A stretch of 64,000 bases of DNA from Marsupella aquatica (taxonomy: Eukaryota; Plantae; Marchantiophyta), in the NCBI GenBank assembly GCA_973895155.1, contig OZ316899.1, positions 1 through 64,000 of the forward strand, written 5' to 3'. The translations under genes were made by a program, and so were the position numbers. The notes beneath the pieces are model-generated. The model worked only from the letters and a program-made list of their open reading frames with translations, was not told the DNA's origin and ran no database searches. Below are positions 15,177-63,735 of the stretch, piece after piece (positions within the stretch are counted from its first letter, which is position 1; each line of letters starts with the position of its first letter).

Positions 15177-16182
15177 GTGAGACGAAACTAGACGCGTCAA
15201 TTTTTCCGTTTCTCATGTCTCGAGTAAGGCACGAATTAGAGTGGAGCCAATCCAGTACTTCACGGTGAATTCTAGCACACTATTGTGGCTGCGGTAGTAG
15301 GCAGATCGGTGCAGATTGACTTGTGTGTTCCGACAATGAGTGATTCTATAAAGCTGTGAAGAGGGTCTATATATGGCGGATCTTTATAGGTACGGATGGC
15401 TCATAGGCAGTTTTGTTGACTTTCGTGGTCGGAAGCTGCCTTCAATCTGTCCCGAGATAAGGCTGAGAAATGCTTGCCATATTCAGGGGAAACTAGGTTC
15501 TCATTGTGTGTAAATTAAGGCTTCAAGAAAAAATGACTAGTCTTGAGGGCTATAGTTCAATTTTTATTGATCATTGATCTGAGGTTTTGTCCTTCTTCTA
15601 CATTGCAGGATGTTGTGCATCTATAGTGAGAAATAATTATATCTCGTCATTGAGTTTGATGACCTGGACTTCAAGAGGCATGGACTTCTCCCCACATTTT
15701 GAAATTACATTCTGGTGGGTGCAATAGGTCCAATTTATATGTGTGGTGCAACGTTACATTGAAAAACCTCAATTGGTGCTTCTACTAGAGCAAGGTTGAG
15801 GTGAGCCGGGGAGTTGGAGTTTCTATCTAATCTTTGCAATTCATATTTCAATGAGATCTGTGCAGACACATTGACCGTGTATTTTTCTACAAGTTTTATT
15901 CTTCAAAAATCCAAAAAATGACATTTCCACAACCCACTCAAGTAAGTAACATAATATCTATTTTTTTCAATCATTTTTAAAAAAATTATTAATATAATAG
16001 ACATTATGGATTTAAGTAACTAAAAAATATTATATTATTACAAATTTATATTAATTTTTTAATCAAAATTCTGATTGGTAATAAATATTTACTATATTTA
16101 ATAGTGTAACAGTTTTATTTAAAAAGTTTGGAAAACAATTTGATTAGTACTGACACAAAAATGCAATTTGACAATTTTGCAG

Positions 16183-17559
16183 ATGCTCCATAAACGAAGG
16201 GAGAGGAGAAAAAATGAAAATAAATTTCATGAATATGGCGCCGAATTTTCTATCATAACATTTTGTTCAATATGGGATTATCTAAGCAAATTATGTGAAT
16301 CTAAACAACAATTTATTTTATATTGGATTTTAAAAAATGAAAATATTTTTGTATATTTTGTTACACACATTTTACAAATAAATGTGTCCAATTTTTCAAG
16401 AGCTAAATTTTTGAATGGGTATAACAACTGCAGAAGTGCAATTTCACCAATTCTCCCTCTTCAAACACTTCAACAAACCGAGAAAATCTTTCATCATCAT
16501 CAACAGAGACAAAAATTGCCTCCACTATTGAAAAAATTCATGGGAAAATTTCACATCCTTAACCTATCCCAACTCCGTACCTTACAAGTAGAGAGGGTAG
16601 CTTCTTGTAAAGTTGACAATACATTCTCTTCAACACAAGTAGAAGTGCAACAAATATCAAAATCACAACTGAAAAAATTGACTGGAGTGATAATGGGAAA
16701 TTGGAATGAAGACATGACTAAAACCAATCATAGTAATCTTACATTCACATTTGAGCGTTATCCATCAAATTTTCTAGTGATAGAGAAATCTGAAAATATT
16801 GTTTACTTTTACGACAAGTCAGGGAAAAAGCCTTGGCTTGTAGCAATGCTTATGCACCAACAAATATTGGGAGTGACAACATTACAATTCATTCGAAAAC
16901 TTTTGAGTGCATTGTTTGTTGCTCATTCTCCATTTCAAAGAGGCGAGGGGAAAAAAGCTTTTGACAGCTTCATGACAGGATATGGTCCTTGGAATAGCAG
17001 TTACATGGGTGGCCGTTTGACTTATTACACACACCAGAAGAAGATGAATACCATTTTCGATGATTGCCTTGATGTCAAAGATTTTGAGAAGTGGATCGAT
17101 AAATATTCACATATTGAACTTATGGATATTATATTGGGGCTTTATATGTGGTGGTGCCCAGAGATGATAGAGTGTTTTTTGGAATACTCTCATCCGTACT
17201 TACTATCATCTGATGGTGACAAATATCATGGAAGTGAAGAGCAGATAGGGGAGAATGTTAGACCTAGTACTTACCAATTATATATAAGTGAGGATTATTG
17301 TGTGCAAACACATGCTGATGATGATGCAACTGACTTCACCTTAGCGTATGCTAGTCATCCTGACCATTTCCTTTCAGCAATCGATTTTGTAATTCCAGAG
17401 TATGGAATTCGATTGCCAATTAGAGATGGAAATCTATTTGCATTTCGGAGCGATGTTGTTCATGGTACAGGCTTTAGAATGAAAACATCGAATCCTGCAT
17501 ATGTTGGAGCTATTACCGTGAATAAAAACCTCAGCAGACTGATGCAAAAATTACATTAA
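16183..17559 (+). CDS. TET/JBP-like 2OG-Fe(II) dioxygenase, copy 1 (458 aa from ATG 16183)
   Basis: Intact AT-rich ORF; core YQLYISEDYCVQTHADDD...DFVIPEYGIRLPIRDGNLFAFRSDVVHGT gives HxD...H iron ligands in a DSBH pattern; upstream RG...MTGYG motif; basic N-terminus; ATG directly after TTTTGCAG acceptor. Confidence 0.75.
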   Translation: MLHKRRERRKNENKFHEYGAEFSIITFCSIWDYLSKLCESKQQFILYWILKNENIFVYFVTHILQINVSNFSRAKFLNGYNNCRSAISPILPLQTLQQTEKIFHHHQQRQKLPPLLKKFMGKFHILNLSQLRTLQVERVASCKVDNTFSSTQVEVQQISKSQLKKLTGVIMGNWNEDMTKTNHSNLTFTFERYPSNFLVIEKSENIVYFYDKSGKKPWLVAMLMHQQILGVTTLQFIRKLLSALFVAHSPFQRGEGKKAFDSFMTGYGPWNSSYMGGRLTYYTHQKKMNTIFDDCLDVKDFEKWIDKYSHIELMDIILGLYMWWCPEMIECFLEYSHPYLLSSDGDKYHGSEEQIGENVRPSTYQLYISEDYCVQTHADDDATDFTLAYASHPDHFLSAIDFVIPEYGIRLPIRDGNLFAFRSDVVHGTGFRMKTSNPAYVGAITVNKNLSRLMQKLH

Positions 17560-18454
17560 AATTATTGTGTAGATGTGCTCTCCCGGGGCAAGCTGAGAGC
17601 GCTTGGAGGGGCTACTCAAAGTGGTGAGTGCTCGTAGGGTGGAGATGACACCATGGTCATTTTGGATTTAGCCTGGTCATCATTATATTTGGTATTGAAA
17701 TTCAGATTCTGACGTCATTTTAGCGATTCTTTCAAGAAGAGTAAGGGTTTGGCATAATCTCGTTGAAAAATGGAATGTTGTCATCATGACTTTGCAATAT
17801 TGGGCATGTTGAGGTGTGAAAGGTAAGGCATGTTACTTGTTATGGGGGTGATATATTGAAATGGGGAGGTTTTGCAAGATAGAAGAACTCAAATAAATCA
17901 ACTCAAAGGTGGAATTGACATGATCAGCACACGTACCCTTGAGAGTAACAAACACTTTGATGATGAGGCACCAACCACAAGTTGCAAACCCCAAAGGACA
18001 AGGGTGGGTGTGGATGTCCGGAAAATGGTCTTATTCTTGTGGGGTTAGTGGTATGCATTCATTGTATGACTTTGTAGAAGAAACATACAGGCAACTTCAC
18101 CTTGTTTAGTAAATCACCCTTATTGGGCTTGTTACTTGCTTCCCATGGGCTGAAGATACAACTCTAGAGATTCTATATAGGTGGGCATCCAAACTCATCA
18201 AGGGCATAGTTACACTTGATTTGCGTGAACACCTCCAGTCATCAAATTATTGAATGTTGTCCAAACTAATCTTCTAAGCCATTTTGGTTTGCCATGACAC
18301 AACCCATGCAGACCATTGAAATAAGCACATGTGAAACTGATTTTTTTGAATACCCTGTCTGATTCTTGTAGGCCCGCTTGTAGGTCCATTACAAGGAGAG
18401 TGAATTGCAGAATTGGCCATTGTTTCTAACGGGTCTGGAAGGCTTGACAAGGTT

Positions 18455-19110
18455 AGTACATCTTAACACTTGCATTTTATGATTGACATGAGGGCATTCC
18501 AGCACTCATGTTGCAAGGCAGGGGGCTGTTTCACCTGGATTCAATTATGATAAGAATTACATATAAAAGTAGTTCTAAACTAAGGAAGAATTAAATTCAC
18601 ATCCTTTATTGCCTCCTATTATTTTCACCTTCCCATGTACTTGTTTTGTCTTAGGGTATCACAATATTTCTGGGGGCGGTGGTGGTTGGAAAAGGTTGGC
18701 ACATTTTGACACTTGCATTTAACAATTGAGATAAGGGCATTCCGGCACTCATGTTGCAAGGCAGGGGGCTGTTTGACCCGGAGTCAATCATACAAAAATT
18801 ATATATAAAAGTAGAAAGAAAAAAAACCAAATTCACATCCTACATTTCCTCCTACTGTTTTCCCTCTCCTGCTTGTTTCTATTATGGTATCATATTATTT
18901 CTAAAGAAGGAGGGGGGCAGCTCAAAAAAGTTAATATATCTTGACACTTACATTTTAATGATTGAGATGAGGGCATTCCGGCACTCATGTTGCAAGGCAG
19001 GGGGCTGTTTGACCCGGACTCAATCATACAAGAATTACATATAAAAGTAGAAAAGAAAAACCAAATTCACATTCTACATTTCCTCCTACTATTTTCACTT
19101 TCTTACTTGT
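18455..19110. repeat. Three copies of a ~240-bp unit downstream of TET-like copy 1
   Basis: Core GGGCATTCC(A/G)GCACTCATGTTGCAAGGCAGGGGGCTGTTT repeats, with unit starts at ~18467, ~18710 and ~18945. Confidence 0.9.
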
Positions 19111-21746
19111 TTCTATTATAGTTGTAGTTTGCCAGAGAGAACCAAAAGCACACTTTTATGTCTCTAAACTTTTATGAACCCTAAAGTTCCACTGACCATT
19201 TGTCTTATGAATCTATACAACACAGCGGTGTTATATGAATTCACATGGTCCGAGAATTCCCAAGATTACAGGGATTTATGAAAATATACATTTTGACTAG
19301 GATGACAAAGATTTAGAGTAAAGAATTCTTTATTTTCACACAAAGTGCATTTTGGAATGACATGGGAGTTTAAAAGTTTACATGGATATCCTCTACGAAT
19401 GCATGATTCTTTCAACATCCCATCCGAGCTTATGACTCTTTTTGGTCTTTCGCCGTGGTTTAAAAAGCAAAAGCCAACGCCCGCTGAATGACTCCCTTTT
19501 TGCTAAAAGACGTTAAAACAAAAGCTCAATTTAGTCAATTGACACATTAGCTGTCCGCTATAAAGTTGGATTGCACGACATCACGAGTGACGTGTTTACC
19601 ATGTTTTGGGAGCTATTCCTTCACAGTAGCTGTAACCTTCTCCCAAGCCTGGTGGGTTGTGTTGTTGAGAGATCGCTACTACTACAGTACTCGTTCTGTT
19701 GACGGACGATCAGCTGGGCAGGAAAGCAAGGAGCGATACAAATCAGACTTTGAGATTTGTAACTCGATTCTGACCTCTGTGTCAATTAGTAACATTTGGC
19801 AGTACTATCTGCGGGTTTCCTTCTCAAGCTATCACCAATGGAGAAATTGAGTCGTTGGTCAGTCTGTTTTACTGGACCATTGCACCTTCATTCGCCGGTG
19901 CCCCATGATCAGAAACCAGCGTCAATTGTATCAGAATTTGTGAAATCAAGATCTAAAGTGCCTTGGTCCTCTTAAAGCGACAGGTTGCCAACCAGCTTTC
20001 ATAGCAGATCGGAAGGAAAAATTGAACTAAGTCTGCCTCACTGAAGGTGCATGTTTACGGATTTTACACGTCTTGCCTCTACCACTTCTGTTGACATTTT
20101 GTCCTAGCTCAGTGACTGAGGTAGACTTGTGATGATATCCGAAACTCTATGTTAAGTGTATGCGGAAAAGAGATAGTCCTATGAATATCTTAAGAACGTC
20201 CTTGAACTAAAGGACATGAGGGGCATTTTGACTAAAGCTTTGTACAGATCATTTAGAGTAGGTCCATATCAATAGACATAAGTTTACGGCTGGAGTTAGT
20301 AGCCATTCGGATTAATACAACACGGCACCTTAGGCATACTCCAAATCCCACCTTGTAATTTTACTGGAGACCCCAGTTTTGATCAGGTTGACGGCACTTT
20401 GTCTAGCTACTCAATTGATTCAGAGCCCTACACCAGCTTGCCAATTTGTGATGGCATAAATGAAGGAATTTTGCGTCCTCATCGGCCGCTGCAGTCTAGC
20501 TCGTCTACCAGCAAGACAAGCGCGAACCATACTTACACCAATAGGTTCAGATCCATGATTTAGGAAAATAACCTTTTTTGGGAAGCGTTCGCGGCACCAG
20601 ATGGGACCCGGCCCCATGCCTATCGATCTCATGAGTGCCTCTGTAATTATTTGCCTTGTTTTGAGCTGTCACTTACATAATCGTACTGTCTGGAGACTTT
20701 AGGGTTTTGTTTGATTTGCCTTGTTTTGAGCTGAGGCAAGAATCGTACCCACATCTTAATTTCAATGAAGAGCAGATTGAGACTCTGCAATAATACTGCA
20801 AGAAGTCGCCCACGTACGAAAGGTTGTTCTGAAATTGGCTAGTGACCGAGTTCCAGTAATAATGATTCAACTTAGATTACAAACGTTATAGACGAGGAGA
20901 GAAGTAGTTTTCACCGCATTCTGCAGACCACGACCGACCTAATCTGAAACGTCGAGGCTCTTATTCACAATGAGGAGTAATCCCCAAAATCAGGCAGCTT
21001 GAAATCTGAAACCTTGGATAATAAGTGGGCTGCTATGGCAGTATAGTGTTGACAACACCTCAGAAACACAGACCTCTAAATCTTGTGGAGATGAAAGCAC
21101 CGACTGATTTCTCACATGGTAAGGGACTCCATTAATCTTAATAAACGATCATGATATGGCCAGGAACTAAACAGTAGCAGAAGATAGTTTATTACGTTGA
21201 TCTTTATGCACCACCAAGCCAGTAGCATCTTCTAAACCAAGTCAACTGGATAGAAAGTCGGAATTAGGTCCAGAACATTATTTTGTAGCTAAACAAAAAC
21301 AATTACGACACAGGAGCACATATCCACCATCATTTCTTATGTTTTCCTAAATTGCCATCTACAGAAAATATCGTAGATGTCCCTAGCCCTCATATGCAGA
21401 AGGCATTCACGAAATCACATTCCATTTCCAATGACAAGAGCACAGCTTATAGGGAAGAGTACAACTGCAGCAGCTCGAAACAACCTAGACAGACATTGAA
21501 GGAGAAGTATTTCGCCCCGTACAGAGTGCGCATTTACACATTGGAGATTCGAGAAGAATTTTGATCTCGAAATACTTCACACTATTGTGTCATGTTGGTC
21601 ATGCCAATTTGCACCTTGCTGCAAATGCATGGCTGGCTGCTGGCGCGGCCAAATAGAAAGGGGGAGTGTTGGGTAGACATTAGTCGTATGCGGGTGCTCA
21701 TCTTGCTTTAAGATAGAGGCGATGGGGCAAGGGTAGGCGCTGAGGT

Positions 21747-22389
21747 ATGATTAACAAAATATCGAAGCGCCTGCCGATTTGCAACAAAGGGAGTAATGGG
21801 CCGAATGACCCCAATGAACCAGGATCTGTAGGCGCCTCAACAACTGGAGGGGTTGGACCTGCAGCTCTGGCCCCAGCCCCGGCTGCTGCATATTTAGTTA
21901 ATCTGCTGCGGGAGCTAGGGCTGCTGTAGGCCCCAGTAGCAGGAATAACGCTTTGATCAACGGCATCGGTACCCCAAGATTTGGACCAGGAAAGGAGAAG
22001 TTGTTACCAAACTTGACTCACAATGGTTGAGGTCCCTTTTTCTATCCTCTGCCTGCTTTCAAAGACCTTCCAAATTCTGACAGGCAGAACTTGTTCATTA
22101 ACAGCTCCATCTTTGCTGTTACACTTTTGACTTCACTGACCCGACAAAGAATGTCAATGACAAAGAGATTAAGAAGCAAACCTTAGTGGAGCTGATGGAA
22201 GATGCGACATCGGGAACAGGGAAGTTCACGGAGGCTGTGTTCGAAGATATCACCAAAATGCATGTAACAAGCCTGTTTCGTACGCTACCCCCCTCCTCTC
22301 ATGAAAATACCGGAGTTGATAACTTTGATCCCAAAGAGGAGGATCCAACCTTAGAACCGGCATGGCCCCATCTTCAAATACTGTACGAG
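21747..22389 (+). pseudogene. PP2A B' (B56) regulatory subunit, 5' fragment with stops/frameshifts
   Basis: MINKISKRLP start; FDFTDPTKN...KEIKKQTLVEL; LFRTLPP...DPKEEDPTLEPAWPHLQILYE ending at a GT donor. Confidence 0.9.
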
Positions 22390-22908
22390 GTACGTATTTG
22401 AAGTCAATTTACAGGATATCAATGAAGTCAAAAGCGGGCACTTCGGGTTTCAGCCCGGATCGCTCAGCTTGAGCATAGAATGCACTCAGTTACAGCAGTC
22501 AAATCTCTGTGGCTAGACGTACTACGAGTGCTGAATCTGCACTTCAATGTAGCCGCTTCGGTGAGCGTCCGAGGTCCACACTTTGAAGCATTCAGCTCCA
22601 CTGGCGCACAATAAGAGGCACGACAAATCTAATTACTTTTGAACAATCTAACTCTCTCAAAAGCGGGACTTCTAGGCAATGGATCATCAAGGTTTAATTC
22701 ACTCTCCACAAGGTGCATGATCTTGCAACTTGGTCAGCACACTCTTCGGTTCAATCCCCCCAAGACTTTGGGTCTGCTTAGCTTGGTCGGGATGCCCGAT
22801 CCTACATCCTATTGTTATATGTTGTTTCTTTGGCGTCTAGGTACCGTGGTTTCCCCATATGGATTGATCTGGGCCTTTCTCCCCTGACTCTCGGCCTTTG
22901 GCACTGAA

Positions 22909-27696: not shown

Positions 27697-29519
27697 CCCG
27701 GATCCCTCTCCAGCTTCAATTCCAGCTTTTGCAGCAACTTCTACATGTGCTGAAAAAAGTACTTCCGACTTTCCGCGGCATAGTCCATTGAATACTGGTT
27801 ATGTTTGTATAGTTGCTGAGACGAATGCGCTGCTTGCTGTAAAGCAGAATCGCCTACGTAGCCGAGAGGAAGCATTTATGCTGCCACTACTCCAGCAAAT
27901 GCCAGGAGAGCGCCTCCGTCAGGTGAGGCGGCTCAGACAGCACTAGATTTGCAAACTAAGACTGTGAGTTGCTCACCCAGCTCCAAACGAGGGTGACGTT
28001 AGCGGACAATCACATCCGCTCCCAACAAGCCTTCAATATATTGCACACTTTGATGGGTATTGCACCTGTGTCATTGATTACCCAACTCCACCGATGTGCT
28101 ACCCAATTTCTTCACCTTCCCCAACAATTCTCCCGAAAATAGACACCCAAATGCCATCGTCCTCAACTTTTCAGTTGCTCATAATTATAATTCATTTCCA
28201 CACGAAAGAGATGCTCTGATAGAACACGAATCATAGGACAATCGGCACTTCCACCCTCCCCCCCCCCCCTCTCAGTCTAGTCTTGTCCTTCCACGTTGGA
28301 GCTGGTTGATAATTTCCAGAGTCTCCCTTCCACGCGGTCATTTCCAGAGCAGGTCCACGAGTAACCCAGAGCAATTGAGATTCTCAGTGCCATTCATAAT
28401 GAGCGTGGAAAAGCAGTCATCGGAGGTCCGACCATTTCTGCCGAGAGCCAACAGCGATCATCCAAGACTGAAGACAACCAGTGGCGACAAAATTTGGGCG
28501 CCGATTGTCCGATTGCAAAGTCACTTCAGGGACTTTGCAATCTGTTCCAACGCAAAGGACCCAGGTGAGCTCAGCTCAACTCAGTGGGGCCGCAGCATAA
28601 GTAGAAGGTCCTTCATTGATCTTCTAGCTCCCAACACTTCAGGCACTTTGCATGAGTCTCGTCGTAGTAGTACGTACCCGTAAATTGTGGCGCTTGATTC
28701 AATTGTTGAGTTATATGGCATTCTGGAGCTTTACTTCTCCTTCTCAACAAGAGGGGTTGCACACCAACTTTGCCACAACACTTGCTACCACCCATCAACA
28801 AGCTAGTTTATTTTGAGCACAACCTTTACATGGTATGCTTCTTAGTTGGTATTTTTGAAATTTCTTTTAATTGGAAGTTCACACCCATTGATTCAGTCCT
28901 TAGATTGATTTTTGGTAGGGTGCAGCTCATATAGAAATAGTGATACAATGATTGTTTCTTTCACGTTCCTAACCTCACAGAGTTTACTTTAGTCTCTTTT
29001 GGATACCCTGTTACAATCTACAAAGTAGTTATTTGCTTTTAGGTAAACATTTGTCTTGCATGTCATTTGTACTTTGCTAGGTTGGAAGTCTAAATGCTAA
29101 CACTTTGGCAACAATAGGTTCCAGTTTCCTATGTTAAATGTGTACAGTCAGAAGGGAGCCAGAGTATATTCTTAAGGGATTTTGTTCTTCAAGGACTTAC
29201 TGCAAGCAAGTGAAACTTGTTAGTTAAGTACAAGCTCATTTTGGCATTAATTTGATGTTTGTTTGCAATCAGCTCAAGTTGCTACGTGGAGCCCCAAATA
29301 CTAACCTAGAAGTTGGGAAATCATACTTGAATTTCATTTATTTTCTCTAAGGTGAGTTCTTACTATCATTTATTTGTTTAAGTATAATTCATGAAGGACA
29401 TGGAAAAATAAAATAAAGCAAAGAAAATATAAGTATTTTAAAACAAATATTGACTATATTTTTCTACTTATTATCTTATGAATTTGCCTAACATATGTAT
29501 TATAAAACTAAAAAATTGA

Positions 29520-29690
29520 CTTTATTTTGAAATATATATCTGGCATGCTTTTCTGATTATTGTTATTTAATAGTTCCAGATAGTTTGGCCGGAGATATGT
29601 ATTTTGAAATATGTATCTGGCATACTTTTCTGGTTATTGTTATTTAATAGTTCTAGATAGTTTGACTGGAGATATGTATTTTGAAATAAA
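29520..29690. repeat. ~77-bp tandem duplication in the intron upstream of TET-like copy 2
   Basis: TATTTTGAAATAT(A/G)TATCTGGCAT...GGAGATATG twice, plus a partial third. Confidence 0.9.
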
Positions 29691-29729
29691 TATCTGTATA
29701 AATTAAAGTATGTTTTTGGAATTTTTCAG

Positions 29730-31172
29730 ATGGCAAAACGAAAGTTTTGGAAAGTGAACAAACAAATGAAGGAAGATGGCAAATATGAGTATGAGAAAAT
29801 GAAATTTGCAATGGACGTTTTCATTCAAATTTTTTCAGCGATCATGATATTGCATCCACGTTCACAAAAGTTTGCCATGTTATTTCTTCTTCAAGAAGAT
29901 AATATTTTTCAAGCATTTGTACAAAATGTATTGAATATTAAACATACTGTATCGAAAGCAATGATATATAATGCTTACTATAGATTTAAAGAAATTGGAC
30001 CACCAAAAACCTTTACTTCTTGCGCATGGGAGAATATCTGTGATATTCTTGATCATCATTATTCTTTAGATTCAGTACCCTATAGTATAAGAAAATACAT
30101 CCATTTTCTTAGGTCATCTACCTATATTGAAGAGTGTGTAAAAAGAGAAAAAAATATGCTAGAGAAAAAAGAAATGGTGTTTGAAAAAATTATTTCCCAA
30201 TTTTGGTGGGGAAATGTGAATCCAATGGAATTAGTGCAAGGATTTTGGGGAAGAGTTGATGATGAAGGTGAATGTTTTTATCGCTTAGAATTAGAAAAAA
30301 CATTACAAATACTTTCTAGAAGAAAAAACAAAGGGAAAGAAATTGAAATTGAAGAGGCACCTATATATAGGGAGCTTCCAATTTCTTATGTTGAAATCCA
30401 AAAAACAAAACAGGTTACTGAGATCTATGATAAAATCTCAAGTGAGCTAGTGGGTATCCATATTCGCCCTAAAGATGTTCATAAATCTTTTACTATATTG
30501 ATGCGAACTTATCTTAAAGATCTTTTTTGTGCTCATCCAAGTTCAAAAAGATCTAAAACTAGAGCATCCTATATGAGTGAAATGGTGGGGTTCGGTCCAT
30601 TTCACCATACATGGACACCTGGAAAAAATGTTACATCTTTCTACACTCATAGTAATAAGTTAGTAAAAGCTTCAAAACCTTTAAAAGATTTTGGTAGATT
30701 TATTGATCGATTTGCACATGGGGCTGTGGTAGAAATTTTAATGTCTATGTGGTTTAGATATTATCCTACGTTATTACATACTTTTCTTAGATGTTGTAAC
30801 CCTTACTTAGAAACTTCCCAATATATTAAGGAAGGTGTTGAGATACCATTTTTTGATAAGCACATGAAGAAGGGACCTCCTGCTTATCAACTATTCATTA
30901 CTAAAGATTATTGTTCACGTTTTCATGTGGACAATGATAGGACAGAGTGGACACTAGCATATACTAGTCACCCTGATGAACATATTTCACCAGTTGATTT
31001 TGTATTTGCTAAACATGGATTTATATTACCTTTGCATAATGGTGATTTATTTGCATTCAAAGGCAAACATCTCCATGGTATGGCTTTTAGAAAACCAACA
31101 GAAAATCCTGCCTATATTGCAGCTTTAGTTATGAATAGTGGCTTAGGAAAATTATTAAATAAAATAGAGTAA
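29730..31172 (+). CDS. TET/JBP-like 2OG-Fe(II) dioxygenase, copy 2 (480 aa, most divergent)
   Basis: Intact ORF; YQLFITKDYCSRFHVDND...DFVFAKHGFILPLHNGDLFAFKGKHLHG; SEMVGFGPF; ATG directly after TTTTTCAG. Confidence 0.75.
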   Translation: MAKRKFWKVNKQMKEDGKYEYEKMKFAMDVFIQIFSAIMILHPRSQKFAMLFLLQEDNIFQAFVQNVLNIKHTVSKAMIYNAYYRFKEIGPPKTFTSCAWENICDILDHHYSLDSVPYSIRKYIHFLRSSTYIEECVKREKNMLEKKEMVFEKIISQFWWGNVNPMELVQGFWGRVDDEGECFYRLELEKTLQILSRRKNKGKEIEIEEAPIYRELPISYVEIQKTKQVTEIYDKISSELVGIHIRPKDVHKSFTILMRTYLKDLFCAHPSSKRSKTRASYMSEMVGFGPFHHTWTPGKNVTSFYTHSNKLVKASKPLKDFGRFIDRFAHGAVVEILMSMWFRYYPTLLHTFLRCCNPYLETSQYIKEGVEIPFFDKHMKKGPPAYQLFITKDYCSRFHVDNDRTEWTLAYTSHPDEHISPVDFVFAKHGFILPLHNGDLFAFKGKHLHGMAFRKPTENPAYIAALVMNSGLGKLLNKIE

Positions 31173-32149
31173 TTAGATATGTTTCAGGTATCATGAAACA
31201 AACTTTAATGTATCTTTTTAGAAACAATTATGAAGTTTATTAACTATGTATTTAATATTTGGACCAATTTAGTTTAGGATTGTAATTGTAATATAAATAC
31301 TTATGTTTGACAAAATCTTTATGTATATTGACTTACTTTAGAAAATAATTTTCAGCTCTTATAGCTCTAGAAGGTAATAGGCCTAGGGTAGTGTAGGTAA
31401 AATCTATAAGGCAAAACTAACACACCCAAATAAATCAAAATTATCCCACCTTATGTAGATCATTTGCGTAGTCAAAGGCCTTTATTGGGTCAGCCTACTC
31501 AGGCACCAACTATATATGCAGCCCAAATGCCAGCTCAACAGTCCAAATAGGTTAATTGGCTAGTTAATGCTACAAACTTTCACATTAGAAATTGTCAGAA
31601 TTGCAAATCAAAGACAATGTCCAACGTCATGGTTGTAAACCAACGTTGTTTTTAGGCACAAAATAGGCATCAACTCTGCGCTGCCCTATCCTGTGCTTTA
31701 CTGCTCTCCATCCATGGCCGTTCTCAGTTGAAGAAGCATCGAGACGATCAACCCAGATGTTTAGAGAAAAAGGAGGCATACTCCGTACTATGATTACTGC
31801 TTCTATATTACCGGTTGACTACTGTCAATCCATATCTGATGCTACATGTTTTGCAGCACAAGAGCTCTCCTTAGGGTCACTGTTTGTTAGTGTCATCCAT
31901 GCCTCGCAGGTAGTAGATGTGCTGTGTGTTGATCTCCTGAACGGGGCGCACATTTGGCATAAGCTGCAGGAACATCACAAACTAAAAGTCCGTCATATCA
32001 TTTCGATTGCACCAATTTCATTTGATCAGGGTAAATTCTTCAATTTGATAACAGGCTCCATAACTACCAACCAGAAGCCAAGTGTCAATCTCTTCTTGTG
32101 AAAAACAAGTGAATGCTCACCTAAATGTACAGGCTCCCTAAATACCTTG

Positions 32150-35079: not shown

Positions 35080-35567
35080 AAACAATTGCTATGTTGAAAG
35101 GTCGTCTACAGCGAGGCATTGCTATAGACTCGTACACATATGTTAAAAGTTCTGCAAATGTGCTTGCAACAGAAAGACCTTTCAGGAGCCAAGCAAATTC
35201 ATGATTGCATCATCGAGAGTGGAATTCACGAAAATCCATATGTGGCAATCACGGTATATCAAATGCAGAGGTTTATCGGATGCACGTAGAGTTTTTGATC
35301 AAATTCAGAAGAAGAGTGTTATTACTTGGACCAGCATGATTGCGGGATATGCTAGGAGTGATCATGTTCAATCTGCACTCGACATTTTCAATCTAATGCG
35401 CCAAGAAGGCGTGAAGCCAAATGAGATCACGTATCTGAGCATCCTGAATGCATGGTCAAGCCCATTAGCTCTAACATGCGGAAAAGAAATTCATGAGCAT
35501 GTTCGACAGGTCGGCTTTGAATCATCCGTGCGTGTAGGATCTGCTCTCGTACTGATGTACGCTAAAT
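35080..35567 (+). pseudogene. PLS-class PPR N-terminal fragment, frameshifted and truncated at the duplication junction
   Basis: DSYTYV...; DARRVFDQIQKKSVITWTSMIAGYA...GVKPNEITYLSILNA...GKEIHEHV...VRVGSALVLMYAK followed by a stop at the junction. Confidence 0.9.
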
Positions 35568-40760: not shown

Positions 40761-40775
40761 CCCTAAACCCTAAAC
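40761..40775 (+). promoter_or_regulatory. Interstitial telo-box (CCCTAAACCCTAAAC) upstream of the PHD ORF
   Basis: Two telomeric heptamers ~550 bp upstream of ATG 41329; regulatory role is inferred from known plant telo-boxes. Confidence 0.4.
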
Positions 40776-42009: not shown

Positions 42010-42668
42010 AGCTGAACAAAGTGGGTTGGCATAGTGCCCCTAATGTGGATGTATTGTTTGGAGATTGCAGAGAGTTCATTTTTGATGAGAAGGGCCATTG
42101 AGATATTAGGCAACAGTTATCTTGTGCTTACATGTGGCTAGGTACATGCCACTAAAAACTTATCTTAAGCCTTCCATGATCTCTTCAGACTGAGCAATCA
42201 TTTTGAAAATTAATAAAATTATAAACTTATTATTATGTGTCTATGAAGTATTTAAGGCTTTTTTAACGGATGACAAATTCTTAATTTGTATAAGTTCTTG
42301 ATTCTGATTCAATGGGTAGTCCTTCATTTATAACATACTTTATATGTGTTATCACAAAACAATACTCAAGACACTATCTCCTTTTTGTATTCTGTGCAGT
42401 ATCATTCATGTCAACATTTGTACAATATTGAAGCCAGACCCAAGAAAAGAAGTGACAACTACTTTGGACAAATCAGTACCTTTGGGAAGGTGAGTACCTA
42501 AACATCAAATTTATTCCTTTCTGTCCTCCTAAATCTTAAATGGTTTGTAAATCCAATGACAAAAGTTACAACTTACGGCATTTCGGTACTCAGATCTTAA
42601 ATGGTTCGTGTACTATTTGACCGGAATTGTAATTTTTACTAAATAAATTATTTGTTCTTACATGGCAG

Positions 42669-44033: not shown

Positions 44034-45889
44034 TAAAAAAGTAGATATATTATTTGTATTTATAATTATTTTTTATTACTCTGGACAAGTTAAAGTCTAG
44101 ATTCTTTAATTTGAAAAATATAGGATCATAGGAAAATGTGTAAGAGTATGAATCATGGCATCTTATGCTAGGAGTGGAAAAACCAGAGGGTTAAGAGGAG
44201 ATGATGGTCTAACAAAGAAAGGCTTCTTCAAGGGGAGGAGGTGAAAAGGACCTAGTAGTGAAAGTGAATCTCAATGTCAAGTGGATAGTTTTCCTCAACA
44301 TCTCCCTTAAGTTCTTACAAAACCATGAAAGGCCTATAAATACATCATCCATTTTGACACTCTCATCCACTATTAGGTGATTTATCTTGGAGAATAGAAT
44401 GAGAGTGGTATTCTTGACCAAGTATTCATCATGTTGGACCCTAGATATACCATTCATTTCATTTCATGACAATGAGCTTTAAAACCAATTTTCTAGAGGC
44501 AACTCCAAAGCTAGTTAGGACCTGATAGGCACAGTCCCAATCCTAATATTTCTTCAAACCAAGTAAATGGTTTTTTTTCCTTCAAAAAAACCATAGAAAC
44601 CCATGGGAAGGGGGGCCCAACAGGGCAACAAAAACCGAAGTAGCAAAATGCAAACTTGGTGAGACCAAAGGAGTCCAAAGGTGCAAGGGCTCAAAAGGAG
44701 GGAACAAGGTAGGAAAAAACACTAGTCAAAGAAAAATCCTGTAAGTTATGACTGTTTCAACTAGAAAGCCACGCATCCGAACGAGTAATCCACCTAAGAC
44801 ATTCCTTACTCACCAACTCTTTGACTCTCAATAATCTAGTATGTTTTCTACTGGGACCCGAGGCCTCATAAAGGCCATGCAAGGCATCCAATATTTCTGA
44901 AAGGAGGAGATTCAAGTTGAACCTTCTACTTGTCATATAGCAATAAGTATCAAAAGTGTAATTTCTCACTTAAAACCAAGATTCTGATCCCTTAAAGAAC
45001 ATATTTTGGTATGAATTGACTAACTTTCATCATTCTGAGTGATATAGAACTCATAGCTCTACACTTTCTTTACTTCTCAACAAAATAAAGTAAACAAAAC
45101 ATAAAAATAAACTAACTTCAGATTTACAGACTACAAAGGAAATGATTCCAGTTTTGGAGACTCTAGTAAATTATTGCCACACCTTCAGAAAGGACTTGGT
45201 CTCAATATAAGCACGCCTAAAGTCTCTCAACTCATCAATCTTTCTACTGAAGATACAAAATTGAACAGAGATGAAGTTCTGAATCTGATAAACAAAGCAG
45301 CTTTCTGGTTGCAAATGTAATGATATGCCTTAAAATGCCATCAACACGGTTTAACATCAGCATCGCACAATTCAGTCAAACTCTAAGTCATATTCCGGAA
45401 CAAAGCAACGGTACTGAAAGCTCTGAGAATCAAATTTATTTCTCATTCATCAACAACTACTCTTGAATTGGCTAGCGAATCTTGACTCTACAAGCAAGCC
45501 TAGCAGTGAATTCAATACGAGTCTTAGAAGTCTGTAACTAAATTCAATCACCACAGGAATTCATGAGTTTCAATCACAACTTCAAACAAATGTTGCTTCA
45601 CTTCCATACAATGCACTCTCAACATGCCTTGTTACAATGGAAGGAGGAGGGACTATTCAGAAGATCCAATTCTGAATAGAGTGTTGTCTCTAACTCTCTC
45701 TCTCCCTCTCTGGTTCAAATGAGCATCCTACTCTGTCTTATAAGTGCTAAGGTCCTAAAATGAAGGAAATATGAAAAGCTATACCTGTTGAACTTGAACT
45801 AAGTATGAGGAAAGTACAGCATAAGTACTTAGAGGTCGGAAAATACTACTATATGGGTAATCTATTTTGAAAGTTAAATCTAAGTATCG

Positions 45890-46100
45890 GAAAATGAGGG
45901 ACGCTTCTAAAAGCGTCGGGTGTGGATGGACGCTTCTGAGCGTCGAGTCAGAGTGGACACTTTTAGAGTGGACGCAGAAGTACTCGAGAATAGTCGACGC
46001 TGCTGAAAGCATCGGGAGTGAATCATTGGAGAAGAGCGGACGTTTCTGGAAGCGTCGGTCAAAACATGGTCGATGAGGGTAGACGTTTCTGTTTAGCGTC
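45890..46100. repeat. Cluster of short GACGCT-N-AGCGTC inverted-repeat motifs (second cluster at 49157-49245)
   Basis: About five motifs here and three near 49.2 kb, some imperfect. Confidence 0.75.
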
Positions 46101-46329
46101 CAGAATAGAACAAATGTTTGAAAAATGTCAAAAATAAACTATCTTCCAAGAGGAATGGTAGAGATCATCATTCCACATAGCCCTCCATTGAAATTTTGCC
46201 GTGTCCACACAAGACAACCACGCTTTGATTAAAGACCAGTGCTGGATTCTTCATCAAAAATCTTCTGGCTAGGGAATCCAAGTGGTACTCAAGACCATTG
46301 ATGGAATATGGTTGTCATTGGGGTTCACA

Positions 46330-46622
46330 ACATAAAAATTGAGGTCATAAAATTCTTCTCCAATTTGTAATGGCACTTGTTTTACTCTTCCCCAAAGTAA
46401 AATTAATCATCCATCGATTGAGATTTGAGCACATATGGGCTGAACGTGTTGGCGAACTAATTGATGAAACAGTCTGTGGGACAGTAAATTTATTCCAGAG
46501 CCTGGGTCAATAATAAAGTGTTGCATAGTGTGTCCTTCCAATTTAATCTCCCCTTCAAGAGAATACTGAAATACGCAAGAGAGAGAATCACAGCAATCCA
46601 TAGTAGCTTTTACGGTCCACAT
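46330..46622 (-). mobile_element. Retroviral-type aspartic protease relic (Ty3/Gypsy)
   Basis: FIIDPGSGINLLS motif, then LNFYVV...MVLSTTWI in another frame. Confidence 0.6.
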
Positions 46623-49359: not shown

Positions 49360-50700
49360 CTAAATAGGAGACTCATGATATCGCTTAACCCGGAATCCAT
49401 TGATTCGGGTGTCAAGTGGGTGACCATCTAAGGTAGTCAAGGAAACCGAACCGTTATCCCAGATTTGGGTAACTCGATAAGGACCAATCCAATGGGTATG
49501 GAGTTTCCCAGGAAATAACATATAACAGGAATCAAAGACTAATGCTAAATCACCAACATCTAAATTCACGACTCGCAGCTTTTGATCATAAACAAGCTTA
49601 CGCTTGTTCTGAATTGTAGCTGTATGGTCTAACGCTAAAAGTCTAACTTCTTCTAATTTGACAATATCATAAAACCTATGTGGGAGACTAGCCGTTGGAG
49701 AGAGACGGTTGGATACCAAGAGTCGTTCTGTCGGGAAGGAGAATTCAATAGGAATAATACTGTCCAGGCCATAAGTCGGGTAGAAGGGAGTGTGAAGGGT
49801 TGTAATTTTCTCGGCAGTACGGTAAGCCCATAATGCAGAATGTAACTTCACATCCCAGTCTGTCTTGTGAGACTCTACTATCTTATTCAGGATCTTGCCC
49901 ACAATGCCATTAGCTCTTTCCGTTAAGCCATTAGCTCTGGGGTTGTAAGGAGTAGTTTTGCGATGCTTGATAAGATATGTGTTAGTAATTAACTCAATAG
50001 TTGAGTTAAGAAAATGCAAACCCCTATCGCTTACCAACTCCAAAGGACACCCGAACCGAGTAATAATGTGCTCAAAGAGAAATGCAGCAGTTGTTGTAGC
50101 ATCATTCTTGCGAGTGGCTTTAGCCTCCACCCATTTGGTGGCATAATCAGTGGCCAAAATAATGTATTTACTTCGGCTTTTTCAAGCTGCTGGTGAAATT
50201 GGGCCAATAAAATCAATACCCCATTTCTCAAATGGTGTCAAAGGCAGGATGGGCGTAAGAGGCCATTTGGAACTAGCAGTGGGTTTCCCTATTCTTTGAC
50301 AGGGGTCACACGTCTTAATAAAGTTGTAAGTATCTCTATGCATGGTAGGCCACCAGTACCCATCATCCAAAATTTTCTTTACAGTAGTATTGACAGCATA
50401 ATGGCCACGTGTTTCTCCAGAATGTAAAGCTTCAATTACTTGTGGGAGTTCCCTGTTCTCCAGACATCATCGCATCTTCTGATCAGGACCTTCTTTAAAC
50501 AAAGTGCCCTGGAGGATAGTATAAGGTCCCACCTTATGTGCAAAAACAGCTCGTTCTTCCGCATTAAGGCCTTCAGGAAAACTACCATGAATCAACATGT
50601 GCACAATATCAAAATACCGTGAAGACTCTCCTTCAATGTGCCACAAATGCTCATCTGGGAATTCATCAGAAAGATTATGCTGATTCTCTGGCCCGGGTAA
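49360..50700 (-). mobile_element. Ty3/Gypsy (Athila/Tat-related) pol remnant: H2C2 zinc finger plus integrase core, two in-frame stops, 5'-truncated
   Basis: LHSGETRGHY...GYWWPTMHRD...CDPCQR, FEKWGIDFIGP, ATDYATKWVEA, VSDRGLHF, TPYNPRANGLTER, GKLHTHWIGPY; no RT or RNase H upstream. Confidence 0.95.

Positions 50701-57973: not shown

Positions 57974-57975
<2 letters not shown>

Positions 57976-58030
<55 letters not shown>
57976..58030. repeat. (CT)n microsatellite
   Basis: Seen directly. Confidence 0.97.
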
Positions 58031-58033
<3 letters not shown>

Positions 58034-58334: not shown

Positions 58335-61300
58335 TTAATCCTTTAAATCTTTTGTTTGAAGGTTTCGCCACTTGTCTTTCAGATCAATCTGTGTCAAAGT
58401 CAATAAAACATGATAGATGAGCATGCAATTTGTTTTGTGTGCAAGGGTAAATACAGTAATACAAAAAGCAGGATATAACCGTAGAAGACTTACTTCAGAC
58501 CGGTCAATGAAGTGTGCACCCTCGGCAGCAAGAATTCGACTCCACTTGCCTGGTCCAAACCTGAAATTAACCTTGGCTTAGAAAACCTCTTGTTCTTAGA
58601 GAAAAACACCAATTAATACCAGCTAGGTAAGATATTACGTCAATGCATTTTGATTGATAAGTCATAGGTTCTCTACTTGCCTGCGGACTGCCTGTTTGAG
58701 ACAATTTGTTTCCTCTTTAGACCACCTTTTAGTTGCCCTACGAACACGTATTAGACCATTGGGGCCTTCTTTCATGACTGCCCGGGTGATCAATTTGGAA
58801 TTTTGTATTCCAATACAATCTTGATGCAGCCTCAACCTCTTAGATGACGGGCTGGACGTATCCTCCTTCCCTGGGCCCTGCAAAGACATCCAATTTGTAA
58901 TACTCCAGCAAGGATTGCAAACATTACAAAATACAGTACATCTTCCATACTGTACAAGATAGATGTTGTTGTCACCAATGATTAAAAACAAGAAGTTTCC
59001 TGCGGACCACCTCACCTTGGCACTCGAAGTTGCTAGATTGCCCTCCTCTGCTTTGTCTTTGGATTGGAACGGGGTGATTAGGGATCGAGAAGGAGGATTT
59101 AGCAAATCTGTAATTCGTTTTCTCCCTAAGTTCTTCCCCATATCACAAATGCCTTTGTAATTCTCACTCTGTGGGGCTGGAAGCTCAACTAATCTCTGTG
59201 CTTCCGGATGAATTAGGTGTTGGACTTCATTTGATGATTGTTGCATTTTGCTAGTAGTAATTCCTCTGTTGAGCATATTAACCTCTGTGCTCACCTCTGT
59301 CACAAAAAAAACACCACATTAGAGACTTCAATTCTCCATCAACAGCACATACAAAGACCTAGGAGTCTGAAACTACTCTATACACTATCAATCTGAACTA
59401 ATCAATGCTAGTTCTAGTGCAATTTTGGTCAAACTGTAAGACTACATATGAGTTGAACTATGACATTGGTGAGCACTACATACCATACACTGGTTGGGAG
59501 GATGCCTGCTTTGGCAACAATACAGGCGCCATGATCTGCTGGTTGGCCACCTCCAAAGGAGCTCCTTCATTCTCATCTATCAAATTCTCTTTACCTGTTC
59601 CAATCTCCACCCGCCTTTTTCTATAGTGATCCAATTTAGACTGCAAATACAACCATCCAATTAACGGAAATTATATTTCTCCACCACAATATGTATATTC
59701 ACAATGACTTGCAGCAAACAACAAATCAGTCCCAACTTTTTACCAAATCTGATAGCTAGTGAGAGAAGACAAGGCCCAAACATTGTTAAAACAATGCATC
59801 TGTCTCCTAGCCTGTGAGTGCGGGACAAAACCAATGGAAAAATCCCAAACTTTTTGTGCACCACTCCATCGAGCGGTGCAAATTAAACCAACTATTTAAT
59901 AAGACATTTAAGAAAACAATCCTTTGGAGGAGGAGGGGAAGGGAGAGAATCATGAGCTAAGTTACCCAAGGTTGATCCAAATAAATACCTGAAGCTCAAC
60001 TCGGACTTCCTCGGCAACACTTTCATACTTGTCTTTCAAAGTATCCACATCCCTACGAACTGCGGCCAAGGTGGTCACCATCATTTCATTCCTCTGTAGG
60101 AGTAGCTCCAACTTGACACCTATTGTGTTGTTTGCCTCTACTTGCATCCTCAAGTTGGTCAGTATTGTTTCGTTCCTCTCTGTCTGTAACTCCAAGGTGG
60201 TTGTCATCTTCTCATTCCAGTCTTTCTGGCGCTCTTTCTCTATTTTCAACTCACCTACAACCTCCATCAAGCACAGGCATGATGTACAACAAGATCTGAC
60301 TGTTTTTGAAGCTTCTGAAATGCTCAAGGGGAATACATTCTTTAGTGTGAATATGTCAGAGTGCTCCAGCAACTCCGTACCAGTTGTTGTCAACTCGATA
60401 CCAAATTTTGTCTTCAATTTTTCCTGTTCTCTATCCTCTGTTCCAGGTGTTGCTTCCGCTTCGCCCAATGTCTTCCCTGATATTTCATGTTCTTTACCCC
60501 CCGACAGAGGTTCTGTCTCTTGAAGACTCAATGTCTTCATGGACGTTGCATGATCTTTGTGGATTATCCCAACCTTTGTCACCATCTCATTGTCACAAGC
60601 TCGATTGAACAAAGAACCATCTTGGTGTCCGTTCACAAAAGAACCATCTTGCTGACCTTGCGGCTCTGCTCCACTAGTTGAGAATAGCCCGAGAAGTCCT
60701 CCACTGCTACATGGATCACCCTCATGCACACTAGAAACAACAGTTCCTTTCGCATGTCCTGACATTGCATCATCGTCGTTCACAATTTGCAGATGCATTG
60801 TGAGATGTTTTTGTCCTGTGCAGTTCTCCTCCATCCCGTGGTTTTCCACTCCATGATGCTCCACACCCACTTGAGTAGATGTTTTCCAATGGAATACTTG
60901 TGGCCTTGGCAAAGACACAATTGAAGGGGACTTCTCACTCAACAGAATTTGCAGATGGGATCCAAAATTGTAAGTGCAAGTCATGTTACCTTCGGAGATT
61001 TGTTTCCGGGCTCTGCAGAGGAGGTCGATCAGTCTCCCGCCAAGATATTCTCCCCAATTCTTCCTACTACTTGTTTCTTCAACTTGCTTTATCTGGCACA
61101 AAGACACATCGGCCCTGCTCCCCTTAAAGTGAAGAGCCCCCAATTGAAACTCTAGCCTCTCTCTGATTAGGGAATCTTTGCAATATTGCAATGAGTAAGA
61201 ACCATTGCTGTTCCTTTTAATCCCTGCGAATGACCTTGGATTATATCGAACTGCTTTTTGCTCAAATGGCTCCCCTGACCCTTGCAACTTGAATGTCTTC

Positions 61301-61551
61301 TTGATAGAATCCAAACTCAAGTCTATTCTTCCCCCACAAACCCATGTTTCAGATTGTTCACTGTCAAAGTTCCGGATGAAATCTATCATGTCAGACTTAG
61401 AATGACTCTTAGTGTCCCAACGAACTCCCAAAACAAAATCTGCAAGCCCATTGTGCTGAAGATATTCTGAATGTCGCGCTTGACACAATGTCGTCACCAC
61501 AAGTGGTGGGATAAAATAGAATGTTGGCATCGCCATAGGCTTGGAAGACAT
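58335..61551 (-). CDS. Six-exon gene (~772 aa): transposon-type N-terminal domain + coiled coil + C-terminal telobox Myb (TRF-like)
   Basis: Exons 61551-59989, 59640-59484, 59296-59016, 58877-58681, 58560-58494 and 58388-58335 join in frame (one GC-AG intron) to give ...RWSKEETNCLKQAVRRFGPGKWSRILAAEGAHFIDRSEIDLKDKWRNLQTKDLKD*. Confidence 0.85.
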
Positions 61552-61722: not shown

Positions 61723-62190
61723 GTCAATAACACCAAGTAATTAACATTCATCACCAAGAATGCTAAAATGCATTTGAGTCTGGATATTCGGGTGCTATGG
61801 TGATTGGCGCGAATGAAATCCGCCACTTCCCCGGGAAAATTCACAATGTCTATGCACACATGAACCCACTGTCCCTACTTGTCAACCTTGGGTTCAACTA
61901 GAAAGAATTGTAGGGAACTAGATCCAGAGGCACATAGACATGTACAGTAATAAATCTGGTGTACAATGTCAATAACACCAAGTAATTAACATCCATTGCT
62001 CAAAATGCTAAAATGCATTTGAGTCCAGATATCCGGTTACTATGGTGATAGGCACAAATGAAATCCACCACTTGGAGGAAGATCCACAAAGTCTATGCAC
62101 GCAGGAACCCATGTACTGTCCCTACCCATCAACCTTGGTTCAACTAAAAACAATTGTAGGGGAACTAGATCTAGAGACACGTAGCTATGT
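61723..62190. repeat. ~245-bp diverged tandem duplication upstream of the telobox gene
   Basis: TGTCAATAACACCAAGTAATTAACAT...ATGCTAAAATGCATTTGAGTC at ~61723 and ~61967. Confidence 0.88.
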
Positions 62191-63289
62191 TTTGCAATAA
62201 ATCTAGTGTGATTCAATCCGTACAATTATGTTTAACTATTCAATCTGTACAATTATGTTTAACTACAGTATAATATTCACGCTTATTCTATGATCCAAGC
62301 CGTCACCAAAGATTTGCTCTAGAGGGATAATAATGTGGATTCCTATGAATCACCTAACAAGAAGCGGGCACTAACTAAGTACAAGTGTCCCTAATTAAGG
62401 CTTCCATGCTTGAATTGGTCTTAGCCAATAGGAAGCAAGACCAAATTAACAATACTTTTTGTGTCCTCATGAATACATATATTCGAAGCTCTTAATCTAC
62501 CACCAATGCTCTCTCCCCTTGCACCAGCCTAGGTACTTACATTCTTGAGGAGACCCATCCAGTGTGTCTAGAATGTTATACACAAGCCCAGGGAGAAGGA
62601 ATTTTTTGCCCATTCCCTTTCTTTCAGTACACCTCTGTATGACATAAATTCCCATTGCGACATTTTCCTTTCTAGCATAGAGTGGGAGCCACACAAGGAG
62701 CCATGGCTCCACCCTTTCCCATTCTTTCAGTGTGCCTTTGGTGTAGAGCAGGAGCCAAATATTGGAATTGTGTAATCCTGCACACCTCTAAGCTTGAACT
62801 CAGGCAGGCTAATTTCATAGTGTGTCGGATTGGGATATGACAAAAAGCTAAAATCTCAGCCCACAAGATGCAGGTAATTAAGATTCCTTAGTTAGAAAAC
62901 CCCTCCCTAACCCTAGTACTTCCGGAATGACATACAAATGGGCATACAAAGGCCCAAAGGAAAATGAATTTTTTGCCTTTCCCAATCTTTCAGTTCTTTT
63001 AGTGCACCTTTAGCGTAGAGCAATCCAAAAGGATGAATAGGGCGTGTCAAAGTGTTACAGTCCAAATAAATAAATCAAAGTGTTATGGGATTCGTATTTT
63101 GGTAGCCCATAGTGATTTTGTCTTGACTGTAATAGTGTTTTATGACCTGAGCAATAATTGAGTTACATCTATGCAGCTTTAACACTCCTTTATGGAATCT
63201 TGGAATGAGGTGCTTGAACTTAGGTGGGCTAACTTCATGGTATGTACCTTTAGTATAAGGCAAACAAATAAAATTCCAGCAGACAGGAT

Positions 63290-63735
63290 CATCCTAATTC
63301 ACCATGTACAAATATTGAGGCGAGACCAAGGAAAGAACTGTACACTCCTTGGGACAAATCAATAGTAGATTTATGAAGGTGAGTACCTTAACATCAAAAT
63401 TCCCCCTTTCTTCCCACCTAGTACATGTTAAAATATTCATAAATCTAATGATAAAAATTACAACTTACAACTGCATTTTGGTACTCAGATCTGAAATGGT
63501 TCGTGTACTATTTGACCAGAATTATAATTTTTACTGAATTAGAATTAAAATCTTGAGAAAATTGTTTGCTACAGTGTGGGAAGATCTAAAAAAATTGACA
63601 CCATAAAATTGAAGTTTACACTTTATTGGATTCTTTATTATGAAATATTCTTGAACTTTTTGTTAGAAAAGTTCTTAAACTAAAGTCCTCAAGGTTTTGA
63701 AGGACAATGTTTTTGAATGGCTATCAAAGATGTCA
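63290..63735 (+). pseudogene. TET/JBP-like copy 4: decayed 5' fragment closest to copy 3
   Basis: Homologous to 42400-42905 (exon, AAG|GTGAGT intron, TTTGCTACAGTGTGGGAAGA...TTGAATGG); acceptor and ATG deleted, frameshifted, truncated. Confidence 0.88.

Follow-up and report, generated by a model that had tools for sequence, protein, structure and literature searches.

Predicted TET/JBP-fold dioxygenase genes in a fragment-littered subtelomere of Marsupella aquatica

The first 64,000 nucleotides of contig OZ316899.1 from Marsupella aquatica (Marchantiophyta), here called the window, contain three intact genes (TET1, TET2 and TET3) and one decayed copy whose products are predicted to adopt the TET/JBP fold. 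To our knowledge, TET/JBP-type DNA-base dioxygenases are reported as not found in plants. The interval under study lies 15-64 kb from a telomere and also holds a gene for three PHD fingers and a putative chimeric gene, PMD-Myb, that would end in a telobox Myb domain. We propose that this is a transposon-rich subtelomere, littered with gene fragments, in which several TET/JBP-fold one-gene units are found, and that the PHD and PMD-Myb genes are separate from them. The TET-like genes would belong to a land-plant clade of TET/JBP-fold Fe(II) dioxygenases that is highly divergent and has not been described before. Taken as a whole, we hold this reading with slightly better than even confidence.

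The TET-like genes

The fold assignment comes from structural modelling. The model that AlphaFold yields from 78 aligned sequences has a mean predicted local distance difference test score (pLDDT) of 90.7 and a predicted TM-score (pTM) of 0.92; it supersedes an unusable model from a 4-sequence alignment (pLDDT 41.6). The best Foldseek matches in the PDB are CcTet (Coprinopsis), human TET2, CMD1 (Chlamydomonas) and NgTet1 (Naegleria), with E values of 2e-8 to 8.5e-5, and FTO and other dioxygenases rank among or below the weakest of the TET matches. In the AFDB the best matches are fungal Tet-like 2-oxoglutarate (2OG)-Fe(II) oxygenase proteins (PF20515). These align over residues 11-453, so the N-terminal helical domain is common too. 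Searches of ESM Atlas and BFVD also return TET/JBP families. TM-scores lie between 0.34 and 0.76, varying with normalisation. The family sequence profile finds a single informative PDB match, CMD1, through the HxD...H core (E 6e-4 to 3e-3). At the level of the model, the TET/JBP-fold identity of TET1-TET3 is confirmed. The chance that a frame of 454-480 codons would stay open at the AT-rich composition of these genes is about 1e-16 to 1e-18, and each of the other five frames contains 25-57 stops. The initial annotation's three intact TET-like dioxygenase open reading frames (ORFs) are thereby upheld.

TET1, TET2 and TET3 share a common plan (Table 1): a short leader exon and a 5' untranslated region (UTR) intron with a GT(A/G)AGT donor and, in all three genes, a CAG acceptor that abuts the ATG; the decayed copy keeps it. 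Since all copies carry this intron-bearing plan, they are neither retrocopies nor a recent prokaryotic or viral acquisition, and the common plan points to DNA-level duplication from one eukaryotic ancestor gene. The three genes are diverged paralogues with 28-50% amino acid identity to one another, and their nucleotide identity of about 72% is confined to the 3' ~480 bp. The ratio of nonsynonymous to synonymous substitution (dN/dS) between TET1 and TET3 is about 0.28, with dS saturated, and the genes are under purifying constraint. The fraction of G+C at third codon positions (GC3) is 0.21-0.30 in the TET-like genes against 0.38-0.56 in the other ORFs of the window. The proteins begin with a basic, KRKR-type stretch that may be a nuclear localisation signal (NLS).

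Each TET-like gene lies in a sharply bounded island of low GC (0.24-0.36) that is depleted in CpG (15501-17500, 29001-31500 and 42001-45500). A TET3-like contig from another sequencing run (L005) is likewise AT-rich, with a GC content of 0.325.

When the family profile was run exhaustively against 1.8 billion representatives, it found only 77 relatives, most of them fragments; about 43 clusters reach E<=1e-10. A word-based homologue search with TET3 returned a single protein. Ten relatives were looked up, and for the six closer ones the sole sources are contigs of Logan, ENA or JGI that carry no annotation. Copies resembling TET1, TET3 and PHD come from different runs of one SRA series. Homologues of the TET-like or PHD genes with 21-80% identity are present on five contigs (L002, L003, L005, L006 and L007) from several runs of the series SRR18067351 to SRR18067573. 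This suggests that both families occur widely within one plant group from which low-coverage sequence was taken.

The copy structure was examined by a read-depth test over 40400-46399 in four runs from two organisms, in which depths are summed word depths and not copy numbers. The runs were taken as low-coverage DNA because they comprise only short, repeat-like contigs and a few very long records. All four contain many variants of both TET3 and PHD at 85-99% identity. A 5' boundary at 42419-42457 is common to TET3, the decayed fourth fragment and L005: the homology of the fragment begins at the position equivalent to 42419, and L005 matches from 42457 on and carries a different flank, about 400 bp of unrelated sequence, upstream. 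At the 3' side, loose ends cluster at 44038, five bases past the TET3 stop codon, and other copies diverge there. A TET1-like copy (L006) is 5'-truncated and ends 34 bp past its stop. On these data, the genes for the TET-like and PHD proteins appear to be repeat units present in many copies and not single-copy syntenic host genes.

The alternative that survives best is that the TET-like genes are a resident nuclear gene family, expanded in the subtelomere by tandem or segmental duplication and serving host DNA modification or demethylation, with the PHD and Myb neighbours being coincidental. Retention of the exon-intron structure in paralogues whose synonymous sites are saturated would fit such a family, as would purifying constraint, the even spacing of the three copies (~13 kb, one orientation) and the absence of mobility machinery from the window. 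The TET1-like and TET3-like subfamilies also recur in other runs, so they are older than those species splits. A host family does not, however, sit easily with the many 85-99% variants in low-coverage runs, with truncated and decayed copies, or with a TET3-like copy elsewhere that has a different upstream flank and the same sharp unit boundary. The composition of the TET-like genes is also unlike that of the window's other genes, and their surroundings consist of repeats and gene fragments only. We consider this explanation unlikely. Two further origins were considered. A retrocopy origin is rejected by the retained intron in all copies and the lack of poly(A), and a giant-virus or virophage origin is unsupported, as no relative could be confirmed in a search of metagenome and viral contigs and the 5' UTR intron counts against a recent foreign source.

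The PHD and PMD-Myb neighbours

The gene immediately 5' of TET3 encodes 226 residues that match PF23011, PF22908 and PF23004 in the canonical NSD order, each under its Pfam cutoff, and that align to PHD1-3 of NSD2 in the PDB (E 6e-5). A homologue, P0085, passes PF23004. The protein had been labelled EDM2-type; three NSD-type fingers in order are indicated, at sub-threshold scores, and the class was tested as NSD-type only. The likeness to EDM2 and NSD proteins lies in the order of the fingers (PHD-1st, PHD, variant PHD). The present protein differs in being a stand-alone 226 residues at very high copy, and its homologue differs in belonging to a cassette that also includes a BRCT gene and a weak transposase-associated domain. 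Two tandem telomere-type units, CCCTAAACCCTAAAC, are present at 40757-40775, about 560 bp 5' of the PHD start codon.

PHD and TET3 lie next to each other in one orientation, 410 bp apart, but differ in abundance. Summed word depth over 41400-41999 (PHD) is 30,000-57,000 in run X1 and 134,000-165,000 in run X3, against 1-1,400 and 4,000-11,000 over 42600-43999 (TET3 coding sequence, CDS). PHD is 10-100-fold higher, and a dip in depth at 42200-42399 separates the two genes. A contig from another run (L007) matches 41277-42209 alone, which gives the boundaries of the PHD unit. No PHD gene was found beside TET1, TET2 or the fourth fragment, where none precedes the start of homology, and none lies 5' of the TET-like genes on contigs L001-L003 and L005. 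Given their different abundances and independent contigs with their own boundaries, PHD and TET are separate modules. A PHD homologue in another setting points the same way. On a JGI metagenome contig (L004, 1911-5471), a PHD gene of 44% identity, with the same residues at its C-terminus, precedes a BRCT gene (29.9 bits, above cutoff), after which come an ORF with a weak F-box and a Transpos_assoc domain that is likewise weak; no TET gene was found 3' of this PHD homologue on the contig. The cassette looks like CACTA-type cargo from a related environmental plant. In the same depth profile the segment 45400-45600, 3' of TET3, has 10-50 times the word depth of its neighbours in all four runs and is another high-copy repeat.

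The third gene, PMD-Myb, lies 15 kb from PHD and TET3 on the opposite strand. Its three Myb exons join in phase at GT/AG sites under the predicted splicing, and against PF00249 the joined domain reaches 32 bits (cutoff 24.4). All 21 of its 21 PDB matches are telomere-repeat binders (TRFa, TRF1, TRF2, TBP1 and Tbf1). The telobox Myb reported in the initial annotation is therefore real; its joining to the 529-aa ORF at 59962-61551 is our inference, under which the two would be one gene. That ORF would comprise a PMD/DUF1985-like N-terminal domain followed by a coiled coil. It has no sequence homologue in a word-based search, and its first 230 residues score 0.92-0.95 in ESM Atlas feature comparison with PMD/DUF1985 clusters, which is a language-model lead only. 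The 529-aa ORF and two others, of 825 and 1245 aa, had been taken for transposable-element accessory proteins. That label found no backing in Pfam, where all three are empty even at E 5 (PF10536 included); only language-model leads give any direction, to PMD/DUF1985. As in plant TRB/SMH and TBP1/RTBP1 proteins and in vertebrate TRF1/TRF2, there is a single Myb with the telobox signature, here IDLKDKWRNL. The predicted protein differs from them in placing the Myb C-terminally, after a PMD/DUF1985-like N-terminus and a coiled coil, and in having no H1/H5 domain.

These observations bear on the idea of one composite mobile family, either non-autonomous or part of a larger element such as a CACTA. 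It would carry the TET-like gene, the PHD gene and perhaps also the telobox binder, and would use them to undo its own silencing while homing to chromosome ends. The close, co-oriented pairing of PHD with TET3 would fit such a family. So would a repeat block of 94-95% identity found 5' of both TET1 and PHD+TET3, and the occurrence of fungal TET genes on 11 transposon lineages, including EnSpm/CACTA and Helitrons (PMC12730594). The structure of the locus argues otherwise: (i) PHD and TET have different boundaries and depths; (ii) PHD is missing 5' of TET1, TET2, the fourth fragment and L005, and TET is missing from the PHD cassette of L004; (iii) the 64 kb contain no TIR (terminal inverted repeat), LTR (long terminal repeat) or transposase; (iv) the Myb gene is distant and on the opposite strand; and (v) paralogues of 28-50% identity are far too old for one recently active element. 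We regard a single integrated element as improbable. Of the element families first suggested for this locus, multi-copy TET-like and PHD units are supported, and a coordinated kit is not. The negative outcome matters in itself, as the picture of one mobile toolkit is not supported by the locus structure. A looser version, in which several repeat families, each with a chromatin-related gene, gather in one subtelomere, remains open. The reading that we favour, at the slightly better than even confidence given to it as a whole, is that PHD, TET3 and PMD-Myb are three independent units lying side by side.

Active site, known systems and proposed function

The iron-binding triad HxD...H of TET3 is H373, D375 and H423, which align with H345, D347 and H397 of CMD1. 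Over 27 relatives Y368, H373, D377 and H423 are near-invariant, D377 being the invariant Asp at H+4, and an upstream arginine, R248, is conserved. In known enzymes 2OG is held by two arginines, R1261 and R1896 in TET2 and R224 and R289 in NgTET1 (PMC7854593). The column of the C-terminal one, as placed by sequence alignment only (as are both 2OG Arg positions), holds Arg in distant fungal-like relatives and I, A, T or V throughout the plant clade, where a conserved Tyr stands one column further on. R428 (H+5), a residue that the close subfamily conserves, could be an alternative 2OG ligand.

The altered pocket raises the question of whether the proteins act on DNA at all. The TET/JBP fold might have been turned to RNA, protein or small molecules, or 2OG catalysis might have been lost. 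The replacement of the C5-carboxylate Arg across the whole clade would be explained in this way, and the absence of a Pfam TET match and the position of FTO and AlkB-type RNA/DNA demethylases as the next-best structural matches would also be accommodated. Against this, the iron triad, the upstream Arg and the Asp near HxD are conserved under selection, every one of the best structural matches is a TET that acts on DNA, and R428 could substitute for the missing residue. In addition CMD1, a TET homologue that lacks a functional C-terminal Arg, still modifies DNA with ascorbate (PMC7854593). Of the explanations weighed here, loss of DNA-base modification appears the least probable.

Comparison with CMD1 is instructive. 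This Chlamydomonas TET homologue (PDB 7cy4-7cy8) makes 5-glyceryl-methylcytosine from vitamin C. It keeps an Arg at the C-terminal position in its sequence, which is not used for the co-substrate, and a Trp blocks 2OG (PMC7854593). CMD1 is the sole solved protein reached by the sequence profile, it comes from the green lineage, and the canonical role of the C-terminal Arg is missing in both. The two differ in that identity is about 14% with a query-normalised TM-score (TMq) of 0.34, and CMD1 is not reported to be multi-copy or subtelomeric.

The nearest known situation is that of fungal transposon-borne TETs, found on elements of KDZ, EnSpm, Plavaka and Helitron types (PMC12730594). Fungal TETs (CcTet, PF20515) supply the best structural matches, N-terminal helical domain included, and they are, as the present genes appear to be, a multi-copy, diverged family of one-gene modules in varying contexts within repeat-rich DNA. 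The copies described here differ in residing in a land plant, with no transposase, TIR or target-site duplication found around any of them. Their proteins have neither a PF20515 match nor the C-terminal 2OG Arg, which is retained in the distant relatives with weak PF20515 matches, and their genes have a conserved 5' UTR intron. VANC of the Arabidopsis MULE VANDAL21 is, in the summary given by PMC12730594, a transposon-encoded protein that reverses the methylation of its own family. The likeness is one of concept only, as VANC is an unrelated protein family inside a defined MULE with TIRs.

We propose that each TET copy is a compact one-gene unit made of the leader exon, the 5' UTR intron and an intronless CDS of ~455-480 codons with a basic, NLS-like start. 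The proteins would be nuclear, flip out a base, and alter 5-methylcytosine or another 5-methylpyrimidine of DNA by oxidation or some other modification, possibly with a non-canonical co-substrate arrangement as in CMD1. The units may have spread as passengers of larger elements, as fungal transposon TETs do, or by subtelomeric duplication. The triple-PHD gene beside TET3 would be a separate, far more abundant transposon-cargo module, and the PMD-Myb gene a third independent unit.

Some observations weigh against this proposal. The Pfam TET models PF12851 and PF20515 fail on TET1, TET2 and TET3 even at E 5, and only the distant relatives P0041 and P0059 match PF20515, weakly. TM-scores to solved TETs are modest (0.34-0.47). 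The abrupt loss of upstream homology could, from the alignments, partly reflect fast promoter divergence rather than the boundary of a mobile unit. The block shared 5' of TET1 and of PHD+TET3 could mark a larger common element.

The importance of the family does not depend on every part of the proposal. A constrained, multi-copy TET/JBP-fold family in a land-plant chromosome provides concrete candidate enzymes to express and assay, and, with the 2OG Arg missing, their chemistry may be unusual. Should the genes be passengers of transposons, like those of fungi, plants would be a second kingdom where mobile DNA carries its own methylation-editing enzyme. By analogy with the vitamin-C chemistry of CMD1, one can go further and imagine transposon-linked plant TETs with a non-canonical pocket that turn methylated repeats into carriers of an oxidised or adduct base and, together with an H3-reading PHD and perhaps PMD-Myb, provide selfish counter-silencing at chromosome ends. 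We offer this as speculation and think it improbable; if true, direct enzymatic editing of 5-methylcytosine in a land plant would be a transposon invention.

The chromosome-end setting

The window opens with a CCCTAAA array, which identifies a chromosome end bearing a plant-type telomere and bears out the subtelomeric location first assigned to it. Land-plant origin is shown by the broken LRR receptor kinase, by PPR fragments of the PLS class that carry an E motif and by the plant-mobile-domain-like proteins. Coordinates of the features are collected in Table 1.

Table 1. Features of the window, in order of position
Feature	Positions	Strand	Details
Telomere (CCCTAAA)n	1-2262		~326 units, 2.2 kb; degenerate C-rich telomere-associated repeats continue to ~2835
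LRR receptor-kinase gene, broken	8383-11497	-	LRR part frameshifted, kinase truncated
PPR-E fragment	12052-12357		5' of repeat block copy 1
Repeat block copy 1	13047-15471	+	2.4 kb; stops ~400 bp 5' of TET1 leader exon
TET1 5' UTR intron	15943-16182	+	GTAAGT donor; acceptor CAG abuts ATG
TET1	16183-17559	+	458 codons, CDS without introns, GC3 0.30
PP2A B56 fragment	22031-22398	+	First conserved exon alone, frameshifted; downstream conserved core missing
TET2 5' UTR intron	29352-29729	+	GTGAGT donor; acceptor CAG abuts ATG
TET2	29730-31172	+	480 codons, most divergent copy (28% identical to others), GC3 0.22
PPR fragment	35147-35566		Directly 5' of repeat block copy 2
Repeat block copy 2	35566-40440	+	4.9 kb, internal duplications
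PHD unit, high-copy	41277-42209	+	ORF 41329-42009, 226 aa, three NSD/EDM2-type PHD fingers
TET3 unit	42419-44038	+	Leader exon, 5' UTR intron 42490-42668, CDS 42669-44033 (454 codons)
Pro/Ser-rich ORF, 825 aa	46732-49209	-	Immediately 3' of integrase remnant; no Pfam match
Ty3/gypsy integrase remnants	49360-50466	-	rve core and H2C2 zinc domain in different frames; without reverse transcriptase, without LTR pair
Coiled-coil ORF, 1245 aa	51309-55046	-	No Pfam match; weak PMD/plant-transposon-protein lead
Putative chimeric PMD-Myb gene	58335-61551	-	ORF 59962-61551, middle exon region 58662-59303, Myb exons 58742 to 58335
Telobox Myb domain	58335-58742	-	Three exons; IDLKDKWRNL starting at 58388
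Fourth TET copy, decayed	63305-63763	+	Leader, intron, first ~90 codons; stops and frameshifts; 80-87% identical to TET3
18-bp tandem repeat	63777-64000		TGAGGGTACTCTTATCAG-like, ~12 copies; truncates fourth TET copy, runs past window end

The two copies of the repeat block are 94-95% identical and stand in the same context, with a PPR fragment before each, a TET-like gene after each and a shared orientation. The block ends (13047-15471 and 35566-40440) have no recognisable transposon termini. The only mobility-related remains in the window are the Ty3 integrase pieces. Among stop-to-stop ORFs of at least 90 aa in the 64 kb, or of at least 50 aa in the TET flanks, none has a transposase, helicase or recombinase domain, and no convincing TIR or LTR pair was detected. 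Terminal inverted repeats were sought around each TET unit, and CACTA ends were sought as well; all matches were at chance level. These searches apply to elements contained in the window, those exceeding or lying outside it being beyond their reach. They agree with the initial annotation, which had found no transposase, helicase or TIR pair, and its suggested check of the flanks for transposases and recombinases yielded nothing within the window. The telobox motif occurs twice in the window against 2.0 expected, and enrichment is rejected. Rfam gave no match at gathering thresholds.

The host-derived genes are broken, as had been claimed, and survive only as fragments. In addition to the LRR receptor kinase, the PP2A B56 exon and the two PPR pieces, which are of the PLS class with E motif, there are pieces of GyrB, PLC (EF-hand-like), a vacuolar sorting receptor (VSR), the Stu2/MOR1 C-terminus and an SF3a60-binding domain. 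Unrelated host-gene pieces are scattered over 12000-40100 and in the TET flanks, in a pattern that fits gene-fragment capture by transposons or a subtelomeric gene graveyard. About 900 bp 3' of TET1 a 236-bp tandem repeat (18452-19119) is present in 2.8 copies with an 81% match.

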